A stretch of 63,997 bases of DNA, filler included, from Hyphochytrium catenoides (Eukaryota; Protista; Hyphochytriomycota): the NCBI GenBank assembly GCA_900088475.1. It is 9 parts of 9 records of this genome, joined end to end, with 100 filler letters (N's around TTAATTAATTAA, not from the genome) between each part and the next. Parts side by side here need not be neighbours in the genome. Positions count along the whole stretch, not along the records: positions 1 to 31,334 come from FLMG01002494.1; 8 more parts are not named here. One strand, given 5' to 3'. Position numbers and translations under genes: made by a program. How positions within the stretch are numbered: position 1 is the stretch's first letter; each line of letters begins with the position of its first letter. Positions 1 to 9,804 of the stretch are shown here, one piece after another. The notes under the pieces are model-generated. The model worked only from the letters and a program-made list of their open reading frames with translations. It made no database searches and was not told the DNA's origin.

Positions 1-905
1 CTCTCCCCTTCAATCCCGTTTCTTCCTTGTTTCACTTGTTTCGCCGCCTTCTTCCCTCTCGCTAGCTTGTAATGGTAGCCAAGCTTTTCTTGGGAAGGGA
101 AGAGTTATTGAAGCACCAGCAGCGCAGACGGAGACTGTGTCGACGCTATGAGACTGCATAAAGGGGAAAGCGGGTGATCTGGCGCGTAGTCATCAAACGA
201 TAGCGAAGAGTTGGAGCGCAGAGGGAGAAGGAAGGGGGGTTGGACGAGCGAGGATGTCAGCTTGCCCACAGACAACGGAAGACGAAAGGAGTCGATGGAG
301 AAACGGAGTTAGATCGGAGTCGAGTACTCGTGTACTGCCTTGAGATTCAAGGCACTTACGAAGTAAAAAAGGGATGGAGGTCGAGAGAAGAATGAGAGGC
401 AAAAAAAGAAAGAAGCGAGGATACAGAGAAAGAGGCTGGAAGAGAAAGAGGGAGAAGGAAAGAGAGAGACGAGAGAGAGAGAGAGACAGTGACAGAGGGG
501 GTGCTTTCTAGGGTTAACCGGGGAGGATTGGTGGGCGAAGGTGGGTTAACCCTAAGTTCCTGCGCAAGAGCGAGCGGAGAATGAGAAGGAAAGAGGTGAG
601 CAACAGAGAATACTCAGAAAAGCTGAGACAAGAGAGAGAGAGAGAGAGANNNNNNNNNNNNNNNNNNNNNNNNNNNNNNNNNNNNNNNNNNNNNNNNNNN
701 NNNNNNNNNNNNNNNNNAGAGAGAGACAGAGAGAGAGAGACAGAGAGAGACAGAGAGAGAGAGAAGACAGACAGATCCCTTGGGTGGTTACTTGGTGATG
801 TGAGCCAGTTCCTGTTGAAGGTGCCACGAAGAGGAATGTAACCAACATCCAAAACAGGGGGTAGGGGTTCCTGATATGACCATTGTATTCAGAATATCTA
901 AGTCC

Positions 906-1289
906 TCAGAAGAATCGTGTGCGCGTAAGATGTTGTACTTCAATAAAGTGCGTTGTATCCGCACTAACATTTACCTTTCTTTGGTTATTAGATTCGCGTC
1001 CAGTTTGCAGTCCATCACAATGGACCGTATCACCGGAAGAAAGTACGCACATTAGGTTGTCTGCCTTGTTCCACTTGTACGAGTAAGGAATCAGAGACTC
1101 GCCAGGGTGGGACATCTGACGGCCAAGCCCGCAATGGCCCGTCGTTCCCTCCCAGCTCCTGTCATACAAATGTATAGTAATAGGTCGAGATCGATGTAGG
1201 ATCAGGATTGTGAGCAAAAAGAAGCCAAGCGCCATGAGCCTGACATCTTTCTTCACAATGGATTCTGAAGGCATTTCTGTCCTCATCAT
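906..1289 (-). CDS. Possible small membrane-anchored protein or pseudogene fragment, function unknown
   Basis: 127-aa non-repetitive ORF with an N-terminal hydrophobic stretch (RLMALGFFLLTILILH). An overlapping frame (788-970) may continue it via a frameshift. No family motif recognised. Confidence 0.25.
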   Translation of the reverse strand: MMRTEMPSESIVKKDVRLMALGFFLLTILILHRSRPITIHLYDRSWEGTTGHCGLGRQMSHPGESLIPYSYKWNKADNLMCVLSSGDTVHCDGLQTGRESNNQRKVNVSADTTHFIEVQHLTRTRFF

Positions 1290-1645
1290 CGTCCGCCCCT
1301 CTAGAAGTCTTTGGTCAAAGACTGGGAACTAAAGGGAGATGAATAGCACTCTTGGCTCTTGACTGCGTGCGTCAAGCAGTGTTGGCCGCAGTCTGCATGA
1401 GCAAGAAACACGGCGCCAACAAGACGACGCAGTGCATTGTTGCGTTGTCAAACTGCCTTCTGGTTTGTCAAACCCAAGACGCGGGCCGCAATAGCATAGC
1501 TTTGATGACTTTCTTATCGACAAGCACCACAAGCACCACTACAAAGTAACGCGATCTAACACCCAGAGTAATTTTAACCCGCAAAGTAAACAGAGCATGC
1601 CTCATAGATGTAGTTAATTAGTTGGGGGAAGACTGAGAACTAGCC

Positions 1646-2806
1646 ATGGCTACCTGCCGGTACAAGCTTGGAAAATGCTGCCTTGACGTCAGAGCCGAAG
1701 TCAAGAGACCCAAAAGCTGCACTGAGGCTTGCAAAGAGAGAAAAGACCCGATCACTAATGAGCCTTTAGTCCCGCTCGTCACTGGAGAATACAAAGGTAA
1801 GGGGGGCGGGAGTTACCAGCTATGTGCTGTCTTCATTAAGGGAACCAGAGCCGGATATATGAATGATGAAGCCTTCCCCGGCAAAGGTTGCACGTACGGC
1901 TACGGCAACGTCGCCAACGAGGCCGAGATTTACGACTGCTATTGCATGAGCCAATCCTCATGCACGGAGGGCAGTTCCCCCCCTATACAATTCATTACAA
2001 GGAAGGAGAGCAACAATGGGTCGTACAACTGCCAGGAGTATTGCAAGGATCAGACAGTGGAACCACTCAAAAATGGCAGGGTCCTGGCCCTCAATGATGA
2101 AGCTCAGGTCTGTACTACAGATGAAGGAAACTTGGGTTTCAGACCAGGCACCACCTGGCCCGATTGGCACTCCGGCCACTGCATAGCTGTTGATGCAAGC
2201 AACAGGAGCGAGATACTAACGCAGACCGAGGATTGGAGGTGCCTCTGTACCTTTGAGGAGCCTGAAGAGCAGTCAGAGCCTGTGTCAGCCTTCCCAACAC
2301 AAAACAACAACATCCCCACATCCCCGAAACCTTCAAGCGATGGGCTTTCAACAGGCGCCATTGTTGGGATTGCGATCGGTGCCATAGCCCTACTCGGTAT
2401 GCTAGTTCTGATCTTCCTGATCAAAAGACGTAAGAATTCGACAGAAGGAGAATCTCAGCACCTACAGCGGAAGGATGTATATAGCATGGATCGGAACAGC
2501 GGCGAACTAGGATTGACTCATGGATACATGGAAGTAGCTGAGGTTCAGATTCCGGCTGCCGCCGCGCAACCTATATACACCGCTGAGGCATTGTCAGTCC
2601 ATGAAGCGTCCACTGCACCAAATGCTATTCCAGTTAGCGGAGGAACGAATGTGGTCACAGCTGGCCCTGGTTCGCTGTCCCCTCAACATGATGCCCCTTA
2701 TCCAGGTCCACGCAAGAATAAAAATGTAATGCGAGAGGCGCGAAGGGAAGGACTAGTGGAGAGCGATAGCGATAGTGAAGATAGAGAGGTAGAAAGAGCG
2801 CTCTAA
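1646..2806 (+). CDS. Cys-rich single-pass membrane protein, paralog 1 (two 6-Cys modules, S/P/T stalk, TM, cytoplasmic tail); intronless
   Basis: 386-aa ORF with 16 Cys in the N-terminal ~200 aa. TM GLSTGAIVGIAIGAIALLGMLVLIFLI is followed by KRRK. Aligns end-to-end with the paralog at 3839-5053. Confidence 0.9.
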   Translation: MATCRYKLGKCCLDVRAEVKRPKSCTEACKERKDPITNEPLVPLVTGEYKGKGGGSYQLCAVFIKGTRAGYMNDEAFPGKGCTYGYGNVANEAEIYDCYCMSQSSCTEGSSPPIQFITRKESNNGSYNCQEYCKDQTVEPLKNGRVLALNDEAQVCTTDEGNLGFRPGTTWPDWHSGHCIAVDASNRSEILTQTEDWRCLCTFEEPEEQSEPVSAFPTQNNNIPTSPKPSSDGLSTGAIVGIAIGAIALLGMLVLIFLIKRRKNSTEGESQHLQRKDVYSMDRNSGELGLTHGYMEVAEVQIPAAAAQPIYTAEALSVHEASTAPNAIPVSGGTNVVTAGPGSLSPQHDAPYPGPRKNKNVMREARREGLVESDSDSEDREVERAL

Positions 2807-3838
2807 CTCTGATAAATCTGCGGCGCGGAGCCTTGAGAAGAAGAAGGCCATGAGCCATGAGGTTGGTACGCAGCGGCGCACTCGTGATGGAGTACGTAGC
2901 TAGCTGTACTGCAGTGGCGAGATGACTTCTTCTAGCTACTCCATGGCTAGCCGTCCTTGTTCTCTGCAAGCAGCATGCGCCAATTTCTCTCCTTTGACTT
3001 TCCCGGTCTCCATCCTCTGGCATGGCATATCGTACCTCGACACAGGTCTGCAAACTCCAACGTCGAAACCCGGGGCTGCTGCTGCCACGCTGCCACCAGA
3101 CCTCCGGGAGGCGAACGACCGAGAGTTCGAGACATACACAATCTGCGGATAAGAAGAAGGTCAACCCAAAGATGTGTCATCGAAAAAATCCAAGCTTGCT
3201 CTGGAAAAGACTACGAAGTTATTTCTGTACCTCACCACCAACATTATCAGGAGACCATCAGACTCAATAAATTTTTGGCAAAGTAAAGAATTATGGCTGC
3301 ACTTACGGGACCCAGAAAACGCGACCCTCACTAAACCCTAACAAAACCCTCTTTTATTTTTTATTTTCTATAAAAATAAGCATAGATGCGGTAAAACTGT
3401 ATTGCCCTCAATAATCTCTCTCTGAGTCCGCAGCGTGGGGAGTGAACTAGTAGTCCACAGGAACCGATTAACCACGGTAATAAAGAGATGATGATGGCTA
3501 GCGCCGCTTTGACTATCTGACCGCAGTCACAGAAGGAGGATAGAGAACAAGCGGCGACAAGCATCATAGATTGCGGCCTTTATTAGTAGAGCTTCTTCTC
3601 TAAAGTGGTGCAGACGGCAGCAACATCTGTACCGAGTCCCACCTACCGTACGTCTACAAACACCTTGAACCTGCATCTTTGGTCCCCTATTAGACATAGT
3701 AGACCATCTCTCGATTAGAGCAGCACTGAGACTGGGGCTGGCAAAGCTCACAGGACCTGCATAAGGTCACAACATATATTTGTCGGGTGCCACGAACGAC
3801 AAAGAGAACCCGCAGACTCTAACGGGAGAAAGCGACCA

Positions 3839-5053
3839 ATGTCCTTGTGCCGGTTCAAGACAGACACGTGCTGCGTTCAGGTTGCAACGGAGGTTCGAAA
3901 GCCAAAGAGCTGCGCAGCCGCATGCGGGGAGAAGAGGGATCCAACTACCGGTGAGCCGCTTGTCCCTATCCTTACTGGTGAGTATGAGGGCAAGGGCGGA
4001 GGTAGCTACCAACTCTGCGCTGTGTTTGAAGGAGATGGGATCGAACAGACTACGGGTTTTCGTTCGGGGTTTATGCTCCCTACGCAATATCCTGGAGATG
4101 GCTGCACCTATGGATATGGAAATGCCGCCAAAGAGGCCTCCAAGTACGACTGCTATTGCATGACTTCCGCTTGCACAGTCGATGGAGACAAAGCACCGTT
4201 GCAGTTAATCACTGTGGAGCAGAGCAACAATGGCACCTACGACTGCCACAAGCAATGCGAGAGCCATGCACTAAAGTTGCCAATGCCTGCAAATGGCTCA
4301 GCTTTAGCCCTCAATGACGCAGCTCAGGTATGTGCTACAAATGAAGGAGGATTGGGATTTAGACCGGCCACTACTTGGCCCGAGTTCCATTCCGGTAAAT
4401 GTATTGCGGTCGATGAAGAGAAGAAAGACGAAATTTTGACCCAGACGGAGGACTGGAAGTGTCTTTGTACTTTTGATATCAATAAGCTTCAGAAGACCAT
4501 ACCGCCGCCATCGAATGACTCCGTACCCGTCAATCTTCCTCCGACTGCAAGTCCATCCACCTCTTCGTCGTCAAACGGTGGACTATCCCGGGGTGCCATT
4601 GCCGGCATTATAGTTGGTGCCGTAGTGCTTCTGGGCTTGGTGATCCTCATCCTTGTCGTGCGCAAGAGAAAGCTGAAGAGACAACACGGTTCGACCGAGC
4701 CAGCGGAGAATGTCTCTAGAGGGAGAGCCGAAAAGTTGGACGAGTTGGAAGCAGAGCAAGTTAGCTATTCTAACGCGTTGGATGTTCCTCCAGCTGCGGC
4801 GCAGCCAATCTATTCTGCAGAAGTGATCCATGTCCACGAAGGGCTTGTCTCTCCTACTGGGGCTGTCCCTGTTCCTAGCCATGGGTCGGTAATTACGGCA
4901 TCCAGCCTGTTAGCCAGCGGAGTTAGAGTTTCGGCCTCAAGTAACGATGCGCGCCAACCACCAGAGACGAACAAGAAGGAAGCCATGAGGAGGCACGGAG
5001 TCTTGGAAACCGATAGCGACGACGAAGATCTCAAAGTTGAGACCAGCCTTTAG
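3839..5053 (+). CDS. Cys-rich single-pass membrane protein, paralog 2; intronless
   Basis: 404-aa ORF; all 16 Cys align with paralog 1. TM GLSRGAIAGIIVGAVVLLGLVILILVV is followed by RKRK. C-terminus ETDSDDEDLKVETSL. Confidence 0.9.
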   Translation: MSLCRFKTDTCCVQVATEVRKPKSCAAACGEKRDPTTGEPLVPILTGEYEGKGGGSYQLCAVFEGDGIEQTTGFRSGFMLPTQYPGDGCTYGYGNAAKEASKYDCYCMTSACTVDGDKAPLQLITVEQSNNGTYDCHKQCESHALKLPMPANGSALALNDAAQVCATNEGGLGFRPATTWPEFHSGKCIAVDEEKKDEILTQTEDWKCLCTFDINKLQKTIPPPSNDSVPVNLPPTASPSTSSSSNGGLSRGAIAGIIVGAVVLLGLVILILVVRKRKLKRQHGSTEPAENVSRGRAEKLDELEAEQVSYSNALDVPPAAAQPIYSAEVIHVHEGLVSPTGAVPVPSHGSVITASSLLASGVRVSASSNDARQPPETNKKEAMRRHGVLETDSDDEDLKVETSL

Positions 5054-6437: not shown

Positions 6438-9400
6438 ATGGGCAAGCTTGCGTATGTCTCAGTGCCCATGGGAGAAGCCGAGAACCGTTCTTCTACAGCG
6501 CCGACGACTCCGTCTGAGTGCGGGTCAACTGTTCCCGCCTCTGAGCCTTCTCCTTCTTTGCCTGGGGCCACTCTCTCTTCATCGCCCACACCCAAGAAGG
6601 CTGACCCCACCAGCGCAGTGGGTGAGGTTCAGACATACGGAAGCATCGAGGTGCCTCGAGCCGAAAGCAATGACAAAGGACCTTTGAGGTGAGGAAGTGG
6701 CCACCTCTCTGAACGTTGTCTCTTGGCATGACCCATCCTTTCACTCTCCCAAAACTTCTTTGTAATGATCTGTCATCCTGTATCACTTCTGGCCCATCCT
6801 TCAGCCTTTAGATCCGGTAATCCTAACGTTTTTTTCAGAGCTTTGACTATTCACGAAGCGCCTTCTTCTTTGTGCTGAGACATGCTTGGCCCTTGTCAAA
6901 CTCTTCCTTTTTGACCTTTGTCGTCCTACTTCCTCATTGTCTGTGAATGACGCTCTTCGCTCTTACTAGCAGGGAGCGTCGCCGTGCTCTTCTTCTTCTT
7001 ATCTCGGTTCTCGCTGTGCTACTGGTTATTGGAGGACTCCTTCTCCAACACGGTCTTCAAGCTGTCTGGGACCCCGTTGCGATTGAGTTTGGTAGCAAAG
7101 CCGGCCACTTGGAAGAGCTCAGGGAGCCCAACGCTGTCTCCTCAATCAATGGCTTGCTTGAGACCTCGCTGGAGGTAGTGCCAACCTATTACCAGGGTCG
7201 TGTCTCCTACATGACTAGAAGCTACAATGGGACCATCCCAGGACCGACGTTAAGGTGCGCATCTCAGGGTATTTCTCACCCTTGCTAGTCATCTCTCCTG
7301 GCTCTGTCTCTATTTGGCTCTCGGCGTCTCTCTTCTGCTTCCTCACGCTCCTGCAAAGGATTCCTCGGAAGTTTAGGGTTTTGCACCTCCATCAGTTGAA
7401 TCGCTCTTCCTTTGTTCCAGATTCTTCTGCTCTTCATCACAATGCCTTTCCTCAGTCTCATAGGATAAGAACTGTGCTGTCTCTCTCCCTCTCTCTCTTC
7501 TCCTCTTATCTTTCGCGTAGCCTTCTTTCTCCACACCCTAACCCTCCTCCCTGAACCCTCACCTGCCCGCCTTTAGAGTCCGACCAGGAGACACTCTAAA
7601 GATTAAGCTGGTCAATCGGTTAGGACCGAACCTTTCTGGCCCTGAGAGAGAAAGAGATAACTTCTTCCATTCTCCGAATACGACCAACCTTCACGTTCAT
7701 GGCCTGCATGTCTCTCCGTCAGGGAAGGCAGATAACGTCTTTAGAGCATGTGTGCCTGGAGAAGAGATAGAGTATGAGTACGTCCTCCCACTTTCGCATC
7801 CAAGCGGACTCTTTCACTATCATCCGCACTTCCATGGGTCAGCCACTCTGCAGGTAATATGGTATCGTTGTGAGGAGAACCGAGTGATCGAACTGACAAA
7901 TAAAGACGTACACCGGCGAGAAATAGGTTTGATAATATCTGCAAGGACAACGAAATGGGCGGGAGGAAAGGAAGAGAGCGAGAGTGTGTGTGTGAGAGAG
8001 ATAGAGAGAGAAAGGAAGAAGAGTAGGGGGGAGAAACCATGGCAACTGCTAGCGATGAAAAGGAGGGAAGGGCCACACTGGAGTTGACTAGTTTGACCGA
8101 ACGCTTATCAGCTTCGTTATGGCTCTTGCTAATTCTTCAGGTTGGAGGCGGTATGGAAGGCGCCATCATCGTGGAGGACAGAGAAGAGCTTCTCCCTGTC
8201 GCTCTTTCCGCGATGAAGGAGAGGCTTTTAGTCGTACAAATCATCAATGTGGGCGTGGGTACGCTGCGGAACTATCTCAATGTGCATAGAATCTCGCACA
8301 GTACGCTGGATCTCAAAGAGAGACTCCCACCCGAAGAAGAGAAGCAGCAGGGAAAGATAGTTGACGAGAAGGAGACCAGACGAAGAGAAGAGAGGAGGAT
8401 GAACTTTCTCTACTATGCCATAGTGAATGGGCAAGATCAACCCAAGATGACGATGAAGCCGGGAGAGTTCCAACGCCTAAGACTGCTCAATGCTGGGGAC
8501 AACGACATATTAGAGATCTACATTGACGAAACAGAAGTAGGACGGGGTAGAGATTTCGAGTCTTCTCTTTTCTCCTCTCCTCGCGACTTTACCTCCTCCT
8601 GTGAGATGGTAGTCTTAGCTCGTGATGGCGTATATCTACGAGAGCCGCGGAGAAAAGGGATTGTGGTCGTTGCTCCGGGTAGTAGAGCAGACTTCGCTGT
8701 GCGGTGCAATGAGTCCGGCATTTTTTCTCTTTCATCCAAGAGGTTTTCTAGCCTTGACAGCTACATGGGCTTGGGGTCTGACGTTTACAGTGGCAGGCTA
8801 GCGTTTCTCGTTATTGAGGGAGAGAAGAAAGAGATGCAATATCCCTTTTCTCTCCCTCCCACGGGGCTCGACAATCTCACTCATCTAGAGAGAGGGAAAG
8901 TAGACTCTTTCTTTCGCTTCGAGTGGTTCCATGGCGGACATGTAGAGATAGATGGAGCCAACTATACAGCCTATGGCGTCAATGGTGCGTGGGAAAGAAA
9001 GTCAGAGGGAGAGTTGATGTCAAAGTGAAGCATAGGCTGGAGGCGGTTTTGAGTGATAGTTCAGACCACTTGCAGTTAATCTCTCTGTCTGTCTGCAGTC
9101 TCTCTCTCTTGCTCGTTTTTCTGTTCTCTCTCGCTCCATGCTCTTTCTGTTCTGGCCTGTGACTCTCTTTTCCCGGCGGCAGTCATTTTATGCATACACA
9201 CACTGCGACTGACCCAGCTCCTTTCTTGGCTTCTGACTTCCGCTTAGGCGTTGCGTACAATGGAACCCCCATCTATACCAGCAGATTGAACGCTGTAAAT
9301 GAGTGGGACCTGGTAAACTTGAAAAAGGGTGAAGGAGAGCAAGACACCAATCATCCTTGGCACATTCACGTGAATCATGTACAGATAGTGTCAGTTTCTC

Positions 9401-9804
9401 ATGGAGAAGGTGTGGACTATGACGTGGGCGACTGGAGAGACACGATCACCCTTCCTACCCCAGGCAACACCACTGTGCGCTTTGTGAATCGAGACTTTAT
9501 TGGGGAGGTATGTCCTCTTTCTCTCTCTCAGATCGCACCTGTCTTTCAATCCCGTCCAAGGTGGTACATCCTTATACTAATGTCATACAATCTCTCAGCT
9601 TCTACAGCCCTTCTGCCTCATACCACTTCTTATACCTTCTGCATACTCCCGTCATTAATCTCGTGATTCTCATGGGCATGACGTCTTAGTAATAGCCTTT
9701 CACTGAGCATCGAATGATATTCTCATCTTCAGCACCTGGCTCACTGTCACATCGTTGCCCATTGTGACCTCGGCATGAAGGCCAAGATAGCAATTGTGCC
9801 ATGA
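6438..9804 (+). CDS. Three-domain multicopper oxidase (CueO/laccase-like) with N-terminal signal-anchor TM; 6 exons
   Basis: Exons 6438-6688, 6973-7254, 7577-7853, 8141-8984, 9248-9507 and 9733-9804 join in frame via GT-AG introns. Motifs: YNGTIPGPTLRVRPGD, TTNLHVHGLH, FHYHPHFHG, HPWHIHVNH, HCHIVAHCDLGM. Confidence 0.92.

Follow-up and report, generated by a model that had tools for sequence, protein, structure and literature searches.

The gene pair

The window, a stretch of 63,997 nucleotides (filler included) of Hyphochytrium catenoides DNA (GenBank assembly GCA_900088475.1), carries two adjacent genes, termed p1 and p2, that encode a new, unclassified cysteine-rich (Cys-rich) domain fused to a stalk and a single predicted transmembrane helix. 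p1 is a complete intronless open reading frame of 386 amino acids (aa) plus stop codon at positions 1646–2806, and p2 is a complete intronless open reading frame of 404 aa plus stop codon at positions 3839–5053. They are arranged in tandem on the plus strand and are separated by a 1,032 bp spacer (positions 2807–3838). The mean number of introns per gene in H. catenoides, a free-living saprotroph and pseudofungus, is 3.64 (PMC5795050). The spacer displays one telomere-like AAACCCTAA motif together with an A/T-rich stretch at positions 3320–3345.

Aligned end to end, the two aa sequences share 45% identity (BLASTP, E-value = 9e-114), and the homology starts precisely at Met1. Identity is 58–60% over the first ~205 residues and ~40% in the tails. 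With Nei-Gojobori counts the proportion of synonymous differences (pS) is ~0.80, i.e. saturated, and nonsynonymous differences (pN) amount to a proportion of 0.25 for the Cys-rich region and 0.43 for the tail; these values supply the comparison of ectodomain and tail divergence that an earlier sequence-only reading of this DNA had proposed. Because pS is saturated while pN stays at these values, the duplication is old and both copies are constrained. Thus p1 and p2 are an old duplicate pair, with both copies under purifying selection that is strongest N-terminally.

It is extremely improbable that p1 and p2 are non-functional, chance open frames or decaying duplicates. The lack of homologues elsewhere (see below) would fit such an origin, but both frames of ~390 aa are intact, pN is 0.25–0.43 against the saturated pS, and the 16 Cys and two motifs of the tail have all persisted past synonymous saturation.

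The 5′ flanks of p1 and p2 show no similarity at either the DNA or the protein level. Within the coding regions, codons 4–7 (TGCCGGT[A/T]CAAG; positions 1655–1666 and 3848–3859) have 11 of 12 bases the same in the two genes despite synonymous saturation elsewhere. This near identity could reflect chance or a constraint close to the start codon.

Domain organization of the encoded proteins

Each protein carries 16 Cys, all situated within residues 4–201 of p1 and 4–210 of p2. Fifteen of these share alignment columns between the two sequences and the 16th is shifted by one column. The Cys-rich region of each consists of two modules of ~75–80 aa with the pattern CxxxC...C...C...CxC, plus four extra Cys. 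The sequence-only reading had described intronless tandem paralogs with all 16 Cys in common and a two-copy six-Cys module, followed by a Ser/Pro/Thr (S/P/T) stalk, a transmembrane helix and a basic stop-transfer sequence, and this description holds; Cys spacing and the MAFFT register agree on the modules.

In p1, the Cys-rich region begins with a basic leader (aa 1–24; positions 1646–1717, plus strand) that carries C4, C11 and C12 and, by hydropathy, no hydrophobic signal peptide. Module 1 follows at aa 25–100 (C25xxxC29...C60...C82...C98xC100; positions 1718–1945, plus strand). A linker at aa 101–128 (positions 1946–2029, plus strand) contains C106 and a conserved NNG(S/T) sequon at N124, and module 2 spans aa 129–201 (C129xxxC133...C156...GFRPG...C179...C199xC201; positions 2030–2248, plus strand). 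p2 has the same arrangement: a basic leader at aa 1–24 with C4, C11 and C12, module 1 at aa 25–107 (positions 3911–4159, plus strand), a linker at aa 108–135 with one Cys and the conserved NNG(S/T) sequon, and module 2 at aa 136–210 (positions 4244–4468, plus strand).

The gaps between successive Cys are 4/31/22/16/2 in module 1 and 4/23/23/20/2 in module 2 of p1, and 4/31/29/16/2 and 4/25/23/20/2 in the corresponding modules of p2. When 12 Cys were placed at random in Monte Carlo trials, the duplicated pattern was reproduced 0 and 3 times per 200,000, by criteria set post hoc, after the pattern had been seen. In the MAFFT alignment all four modules share a single register, EPL, Q(V/L)C, GxRxG and CxC being common to them. 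The sequence likeness of module 1 to module 2 is marginal (hhalign E-value = 0.028; local-alignment shuffles, P = 0.005–0.3). The Cys spacing thus offers the best support for an internal duplication, the sequence likeness being weak.

Beyond the Cys-rich region both proteins display one hydrophobic segment with a positively charged C-terminal flank, preceded by a stalk of 46–49% S+T+P, i.e. a single-pass architecture. The p1 stalk comprises 35 aa (aa 202–236; positions 2249–2353, plus strand; 46% S+T+P) and the p2 stalk 41 aa (aa 211–251; positions 4469–4591, plus strand; 49% S+T+P). The transmembrane helices are GAIVGIAIGAIALLG in p1 (aa 237–259; positions 2354–2422, plus strand; Kyte-Doolittle maximum 2.9) and GAIAGIIVGAVVLLG in p2 (aa 252–274; positions 4592–4660, plus strand; assigned by hydropathy). 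The p1 helix shows a GxxxGxxxG glycine zipper and is followed by KRRK, and the p2 helix likewise shows a glycine zipper and is followed by RKRKLKR. Net charge of the flanks is +4 to +6 on the C-terminal side and 0 to +1 on the N-terminal side.

The tail is acidic in both proteins, with 127 aa in p1 (aa 260–386; positions 2423–2803, plus strand) and 130 aa in p2 (aa 275–404; positions 4661–5050, plus strand). Two islands are conserved between the tails: a Tyr motif, AAAQPIY(T/S)AE, at aa 305 of p1 and, as AAAQPIYSAE, at aa 319 of p2, and an acidic cluster at the terminus, E(S/T)DSD(S/D)ED, which reads ESDSDSED at aa 372 of p1 and ETDSDDED at aa 390 of p2.

Searches for homologous sequences

The Cys-rich region matches no family in Pfam or NCBIfam, the latter giving low-complexity and transmembrane noise only. 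A word-index protein search with p1 was blank, a protein atlas gave no match, sequence searches of the PDB with four profiles gave nothing significant, and scans of metagenome contigs and viral contigs showed no relatives. A profile hidden Markov model (HMM) search of 1.84 billion representative proteins gave one match, a 1,426 aa Ig-repeat protein; this hit is spurious, its score being summed over six weak repeats. The statement of the sequence-only reading that no named family has this architecture is thus borne out.

Within the H. catenoides genome (61 Mb in 4,759 contigs searched) the ectodomain is found at only two loci, p1 and p2, and the p1 tail matches only p2. Taxonomic spread and copy number, which the earlier reading had marked for determination, therefore come to no relatives elsewhere in these databases and two copies in the genome. 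To our knowledge H. catenoides is the only sequenced hyphochytrid, and because it is the sole sequenced member of its class the orphan status of the pair is unsurprising. A viral or horizontal origin was considered and dropped: GC content at third codon positions, ~0.53–0.54 in the pair, is not far from the 0.60 of a neighboring transporter gene of the AAAP family, and there are no viral matches.

Comparison with DM9 lectins

The sequence-only reading had proposed that module 1 follows the spacing of the DM9/DUF3421 repeat, a lectin family that includes oyster CGL1 and natterin-like proteins (PF11901). DM9 lectins resemble p1 and p2 in consisting of paired units of ~70–80 aa, and the order G..(Y)x(L/V)C ... 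G(x)(R/H)PG ... C ... (Y/W)x(V/C)(L/Y) is loosely collinear between the two. The p1/p2 modules differ in having an extra CxxxC segment and a terminal CxC, for which DM9 has no Cys counterparts, and DM9 proteins are soluble or secreted whereas p1 and p2 are predicted to be anchored in the membrane.

If each module were a diverged, disulfide-reinforced DM9 repeat, the module pair would constitute a membrane-tethered DM9-type domain binding mannose or another glycan, in keeping with the action of DM9 domains in pairs. We consider this unlikely. Pfam DM9 (PF11901; gathering score 26.2 bits) gives no match at E ≤ 10 to the whole proteins, the ectodomains or the single modules, and a six-frame scan of the genome with PF11901 shows no DM9 gene. 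For a direct comparison, DM9 sequences were taken from the 5 of 401 Pseudomonadota genomes that contain PF11901 and from 12 DM9 proteins of the protein database, and were used in an alignment of 11 bacterial repeats and then in a deeper alignment of 34 repeats. The 11-repeat HMM scores p1 module 1 at 6.7 bits (shuffle P = 0.002), p2 module 1 at 6.0 bits (P = 0.0045), p1 module 2 at 3.2 bits (P = 0.015) and p2 module 2 at −0.4 bits (P = 0.29). The alignments produced by HMM and hhalign fall in the register given by the sequence-only reading and are collinear over ~64 columns in module 1 and ~50 in module 2. However, the deeper 34-repeat profile lowers these scores to 2.2 bits (P = 0.06) for p1 module 1, 3.3 bits (P = 0.025) for p2 module 1, 1.8 bits (P = 0.04) for p1 module 2 and −0.5 bits (P = 0.23) for p2 module 2, and hhalign against the 34-repeat alignment gives module 1 a probability of 5% and module 2 one of 0.6%.

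The motifs conserved among the 34 aligned DM9 repeats are CR(A), G(V)HPGK, CN(I)GWGG(K)E and Y(E/Q)VL. At the corresponding sites the modules have CAV or CTT, then RAGY, RSGF, RPGT or RPAT, then GCTYGYGN or HCIAVD, and finally YDCYC or WRCLC. The two Cys conserved in bacterial DM9 repeats align with the third and fourth Cys of the modules, and the bacterial G-x-H-P-G motif resembles GFRPG. Against this, the hallmark Arg of CR, the Lys of HPGK and GWGG are absent from the modules, YEVL is not conserved, and the PDB profile searches bring up no DM9 protein. What stands of the earlier proposal is the collinear register; the family match and the hallmark residues are not there, and profile scores stay at 2–7 bits for the better modules. 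The DM9 likeness appears real as a pattern, yet by the sequence tests it is at chance level, i.e. within noise, because an unrelated fold, described below, matches as well or better. The suggestion that p1 and p2 serve in the recognition of prey, host or pathogen is pure speculation.

An observation made among the DM9 sequences concerns P0130, a DM9 protein with two repeats whose annotated source is a stramenopile, the brown alga Discosporangium mesarthrocarpum. Its identity with a DM9 protein of alphaproteobacterial type is 40%, and it may be a bacterial contaminant or the result of transfer.

Comparison with the StcE C-terminal domain

The unrelated fold is that of the C-terminal domain of StcE, an E. 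coli mucinase, which in an unbiased scan is the top PDB match of the four-module profile (E-value = 0.06–0.2). This domain is Pfam Crystall_4 (PF17945), with a beta/gamma-crystallin-type fold, and in the StcE/TagA mucinases, which belong to M66, it is the mucin-binding X409 module. Crystall_4 resembles the p1/p2 modules in being beta-rich and ~90 aa long, and module 2 has in common with it the block G.R.G..LPDW..G...VD.....L.DW. It differs in its Cys pattern and is bacterial and secreted. The lead was traced through the tagA/stcE gene of pO157, Pfam, 37 loci, HMM and hhalign.

Were the modules diverged Greek-key domains of this type, akin to the StcE/TagA Crystall_4 domain, they would be expected to bind glycans, and we regard this as very unlikely. 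A single BLASTP comparison of the p1 ectodomain with the StcE C-terminus gives an E-value of 1e-5, with the common block G.R.G...PDW..G...VD.....L..DW; that pairwise statistic, however, was computed once the best match had been picked, and the profile E-value falls short of significance for a search of a whole database. With an alignment of 34 Crystall_4 sequences, hhalign yields a probability of 16–31% (P = 5e-4 to 1.7e-3) for module 2 and the four-module profile, but module 1 is unmatched, at 1% (P = 0.048) and in a different register. The HMM of the same 34 sequences scores 3.6 bits with p1 and −2.3 bits with p2. PF17945 is absent from the Pfam scans of the proteins and modules and from the six-frame scan of the genome, and tblastn with module 2 against plasmids does not recover stcE. 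The likeness to StcE/Crystall_4 was judged to be at chance level, the E-value not being database-significant and the family HMM reaching 3.6 bits. Since DM9 and Crystall_4 are mutually exclusive folds that score alike, both appear to be noise-level leads.

Membrane orientation and proposed function

Elsewhere in the genome two other Cys-rich single-pass proteins carry a similar transmembrane helix. L003 (G000:C806, positions 1048–2238, minus strand) has a GLSTGA(I/L)VGI helix and no signal peptide within its open reading frame; L004 (G000:C2155, positions 577–2373, minus strand) has a GLSTGALVGI helix and a normal signal peptide. Both are like p1 and p2 in the glycine-zipper transmembrane segment, the S/T stalk, the basic stop-transfer sequence and an acidic C-terminus. 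They differ from the pair in that their ectodomains are unrelated and their cytoplasmic tails have a zinc ribbon and end in EEVGL. The zinc ribbon of L003 matches Pfam Zn_ribbon just under the curated cut-off, and in L004 a CxxC...CxxC pair is read from the sequence. In L003 and L004 the genome has another lineage-specific set of single-pass proteins rich in Cys. Two short single-pass open reading frames of this genome, L005 (1312–1728, minus strand) and L006 (1453–2028, minus strand), also have transmembrane segments of the LSTGAIVGI or ALGTGALIGI type. The L006 gene probably has several exons because Cys-rich sequence runs on in a separate open reading frame just upstream.

We hold it to be somewhat probable that p1 and p2 are lineage-specific single-pass proteins of the cell surface or endomembranes that bind an external ligand or a wall component through a disulfide-rich, duplicated domain at the N-terminus. 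The Cys-rich region most likely faces the outside or the lumen (N-out), because the charge distribution follows the positive-inside rule, the stalk and the conserved sequon lie on the N-terminal side, and L004, whose transmembrane helix is similar, has a signal peptide. The region would be held by ~8 disulfides and would bind an extracellular ligand or cell wall component, O-glycosylation of the short stalk is probable, and the glycine-zipper helix could permit homo- or heterodimerization. Phosphorylation-dependent sorting or signaling may be steered from the tail by its Tyr motif and its acidic cluster of casein-kinase type. For the orientation, disulfides, ligand binding, dimerization and tail function we infer by analogy, the systems drawn on being the Wsc/Mid2 sensors, the PDLP/CRK ectodomains and furin-type acidic clusters.

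Several points weigh against this reading. Neither protein has an N-terminal signal peptide: the best 10-residue Kyte-Doolittle value in the first ~35 residues is 0.6–1.1, and the N-termini, MATCRYKLGKCC in p1 and MSLCRFKTDTCC in p2, are basic and not hydrophobic. An upstream exon for one was looked for by hydropathy of peptides from upstream ATG codons, by comparison of the 5′ flanks (protein and DNA) and by enumeration of ATG...GT/AG frames. The local enumeration of donor and acceptor frames shows no hydrophobic candidate for p2 and weak candidates only for p1, none of them conserved, and the spacer contains no conserved or frame-compatible signal peptide exon. It would be unusual for an N-terminal domain of ~235 aa to cross the membrane unaided by a signal peptide. 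With only two sequences to compare, the analysis of conservation has little depth. AlphaFold2 models have a pLDDT (its per-residue confidence score) of 35.3 for the ectodomain, from a two-sequence alignment, and 38.0 for a single module, from the four-module alignment, so that both models are unusable, as expected of alignments of two to four sequences. Since the models cannot be used, the disulfide pattern, the fold and the ligand of the Cys-rich region are each something that we infer.

The p1 start codon is in a strong CCATGG context, and an in-frame stop is found four codons 5′ of it. Divergent to p1 is an open reading frame of 127 aa (positions 906–1289, minus strand) that matches no Pfam family and has a hydrophobic signal-anchor at its N-terminus. 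Its start is ~355 bp from that of p1, and therefore there is little room for an upstream p1 exon. Insertion of p1 and p2 would then use either the transmembrane helix as a reverse signal-anchor (type III) or a 5′ exon that escaped detection. The sequence-only reading had called the proteins receptor-like, with an ectodomain: the transmembrane helix, stalk and basic flank that it cited are present, and a cleavable signal peptide is not. Of the loose ends, the lack of a signal peptide is the most interesting.

If the absence of a signal peptide is real, the Cys-rich N-terminal region could instead be cytosolic, metal-binding or palmitoylated (at C4, C11 and C12), with the C-terminal 128 aa outside. 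CC, CxC and CxxxC motifs occur in metal-binding proteins too, and the basic N-terminus and the missing exon candidate would agree with such a location. The charge difference across the helix points the other way, as do the S/T/P stalk on the N-terminal side and the NNG(S/T) sequon kept in the N-terminal region. In addition, the protein to which the related transmembrane segment belongs has a Cys-rich ectodomain and a signal peptide, the acidic-cluster tail is typical of cytosolic sorting signals, His residues are few and there are no CxxC pairs. We therefore judge a cytosolic Cys-rich region improbable, and prefer the N-out surface or endomembrane protein.

In the low-confidence models, for the single module and the whole ectodomain alike, CxxxC falls in a short helix, after which come about four strands. 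The last of these extends to the first Cys of CxC when a single module is modeled, and in the whole-ectodomain model CxC is in a strand for module 1 only. A CxxxC helix pinned to a CxC strand is the classic cysteine-stabilised alpha/beta staple. A CxxxC helix stapled to the CxC strand within each module is possible, but as drawn from these models it is speculation. A Foldseek search with the poor ectodomain model gives noise only (TM-score ~0.1). It is doubtful, in our estimate, that p1 and p2 are the first members of a new class of disulfide-stapled extracellular domain, be it a DM9-like lectin that has diverged far or a wholly new fold, and that a deep-branching stramenopile thereby displays a Cys-rich N-terminal domain of ~235 aa by a type III reverse signal-anchor, with no signal peptide at all.

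Among known systems, the fungal sensors Wsc1-3 and Mid2 have a similar order of parts, with a Cys-rich head, a Ser/Thr-rich stalk, one transmembrane helix and a cytoplasmic tail, and their hosts, like that of p1 and p2, are walled osmotrophs. p1 and p2 differ in having a stalk of only 35–41 aa, no signal peptide, and two six-Cys modules as opposed to one eight-Cys WSC domain; neither WSC (PF01822) nor Mid2 gives a Pfam match at E ≤ 10. The plant PDLP and CRK proteins also resemble the pair, with two tandem six-Cys DUF26 (Gnk2-like) alpha/beta modules of ~80–100 aa that have three disulfides each, a transmembrane helix and a tail. Gnk2 binds mannose. The DUF26 Cys motif, C-x8-C-x2-C, differs from the p1/p2 motif, DUF26 (PF01657) has no Pfam match in p1 or p2, and the lineages are unrelated. 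Thus the likeness to these plant proteins is an analogy only.

If the favored reading is correct, the pair represents a lineage-specific surface family with an unclassified duplicated six-Cys domain in the only hyphochytrid that, as far as we know, has been sequenced, and it could help show how these pseudofungi perceive substrates or fasten onto them. Provided that the signal peptide is truly absent, a transmembrane helix alone would have inserted a long ectodomain, which would be unusual. Protists that are poorly sampled commonly have orphan membrane proteins rich in Cys, and as no specific ligand or pathway is indicated for p1 and p2, the general significance is modest.

Neighboring genes in the window

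The window contains (GA)n microsatellites and intron-containing neighbor genes. A multi-exon multicopper oxidase is found at positions 6947–9666 (plus strand; Cu-oxidase_2, E-value = 1e-10) with an N-terminal signal-anchor exon. The AAAP amino acid transporter is intronless (positions 10316–11794, minus strand) and is 50–62% identical to oomycete transporters, being equally near to those of Pythium, Phytophthora, Saprolegnia, Aphanomyces and Albugo. These identities are alike across the oomycete groups, which therefore places the host beside the oomycetes and not inside one group. A RING-H2 finger protein gene (positions 19688–20929, minus strand) is followed by a multi-exon full ABC transporter of the ABCB type (positions 23180–27577, plus strand), in which two halves, each with a transmembrane and a nucleotide-binding domain, extend over at least four open reading frame blocks. 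An assembly gap (N run) at positions 650–716 is situated inside a (GA)n microsatellite, and long (GA)n/(CT)n tracts, e.g. at positions 17466–18963, yield spurious SLSLSL open reading frames.

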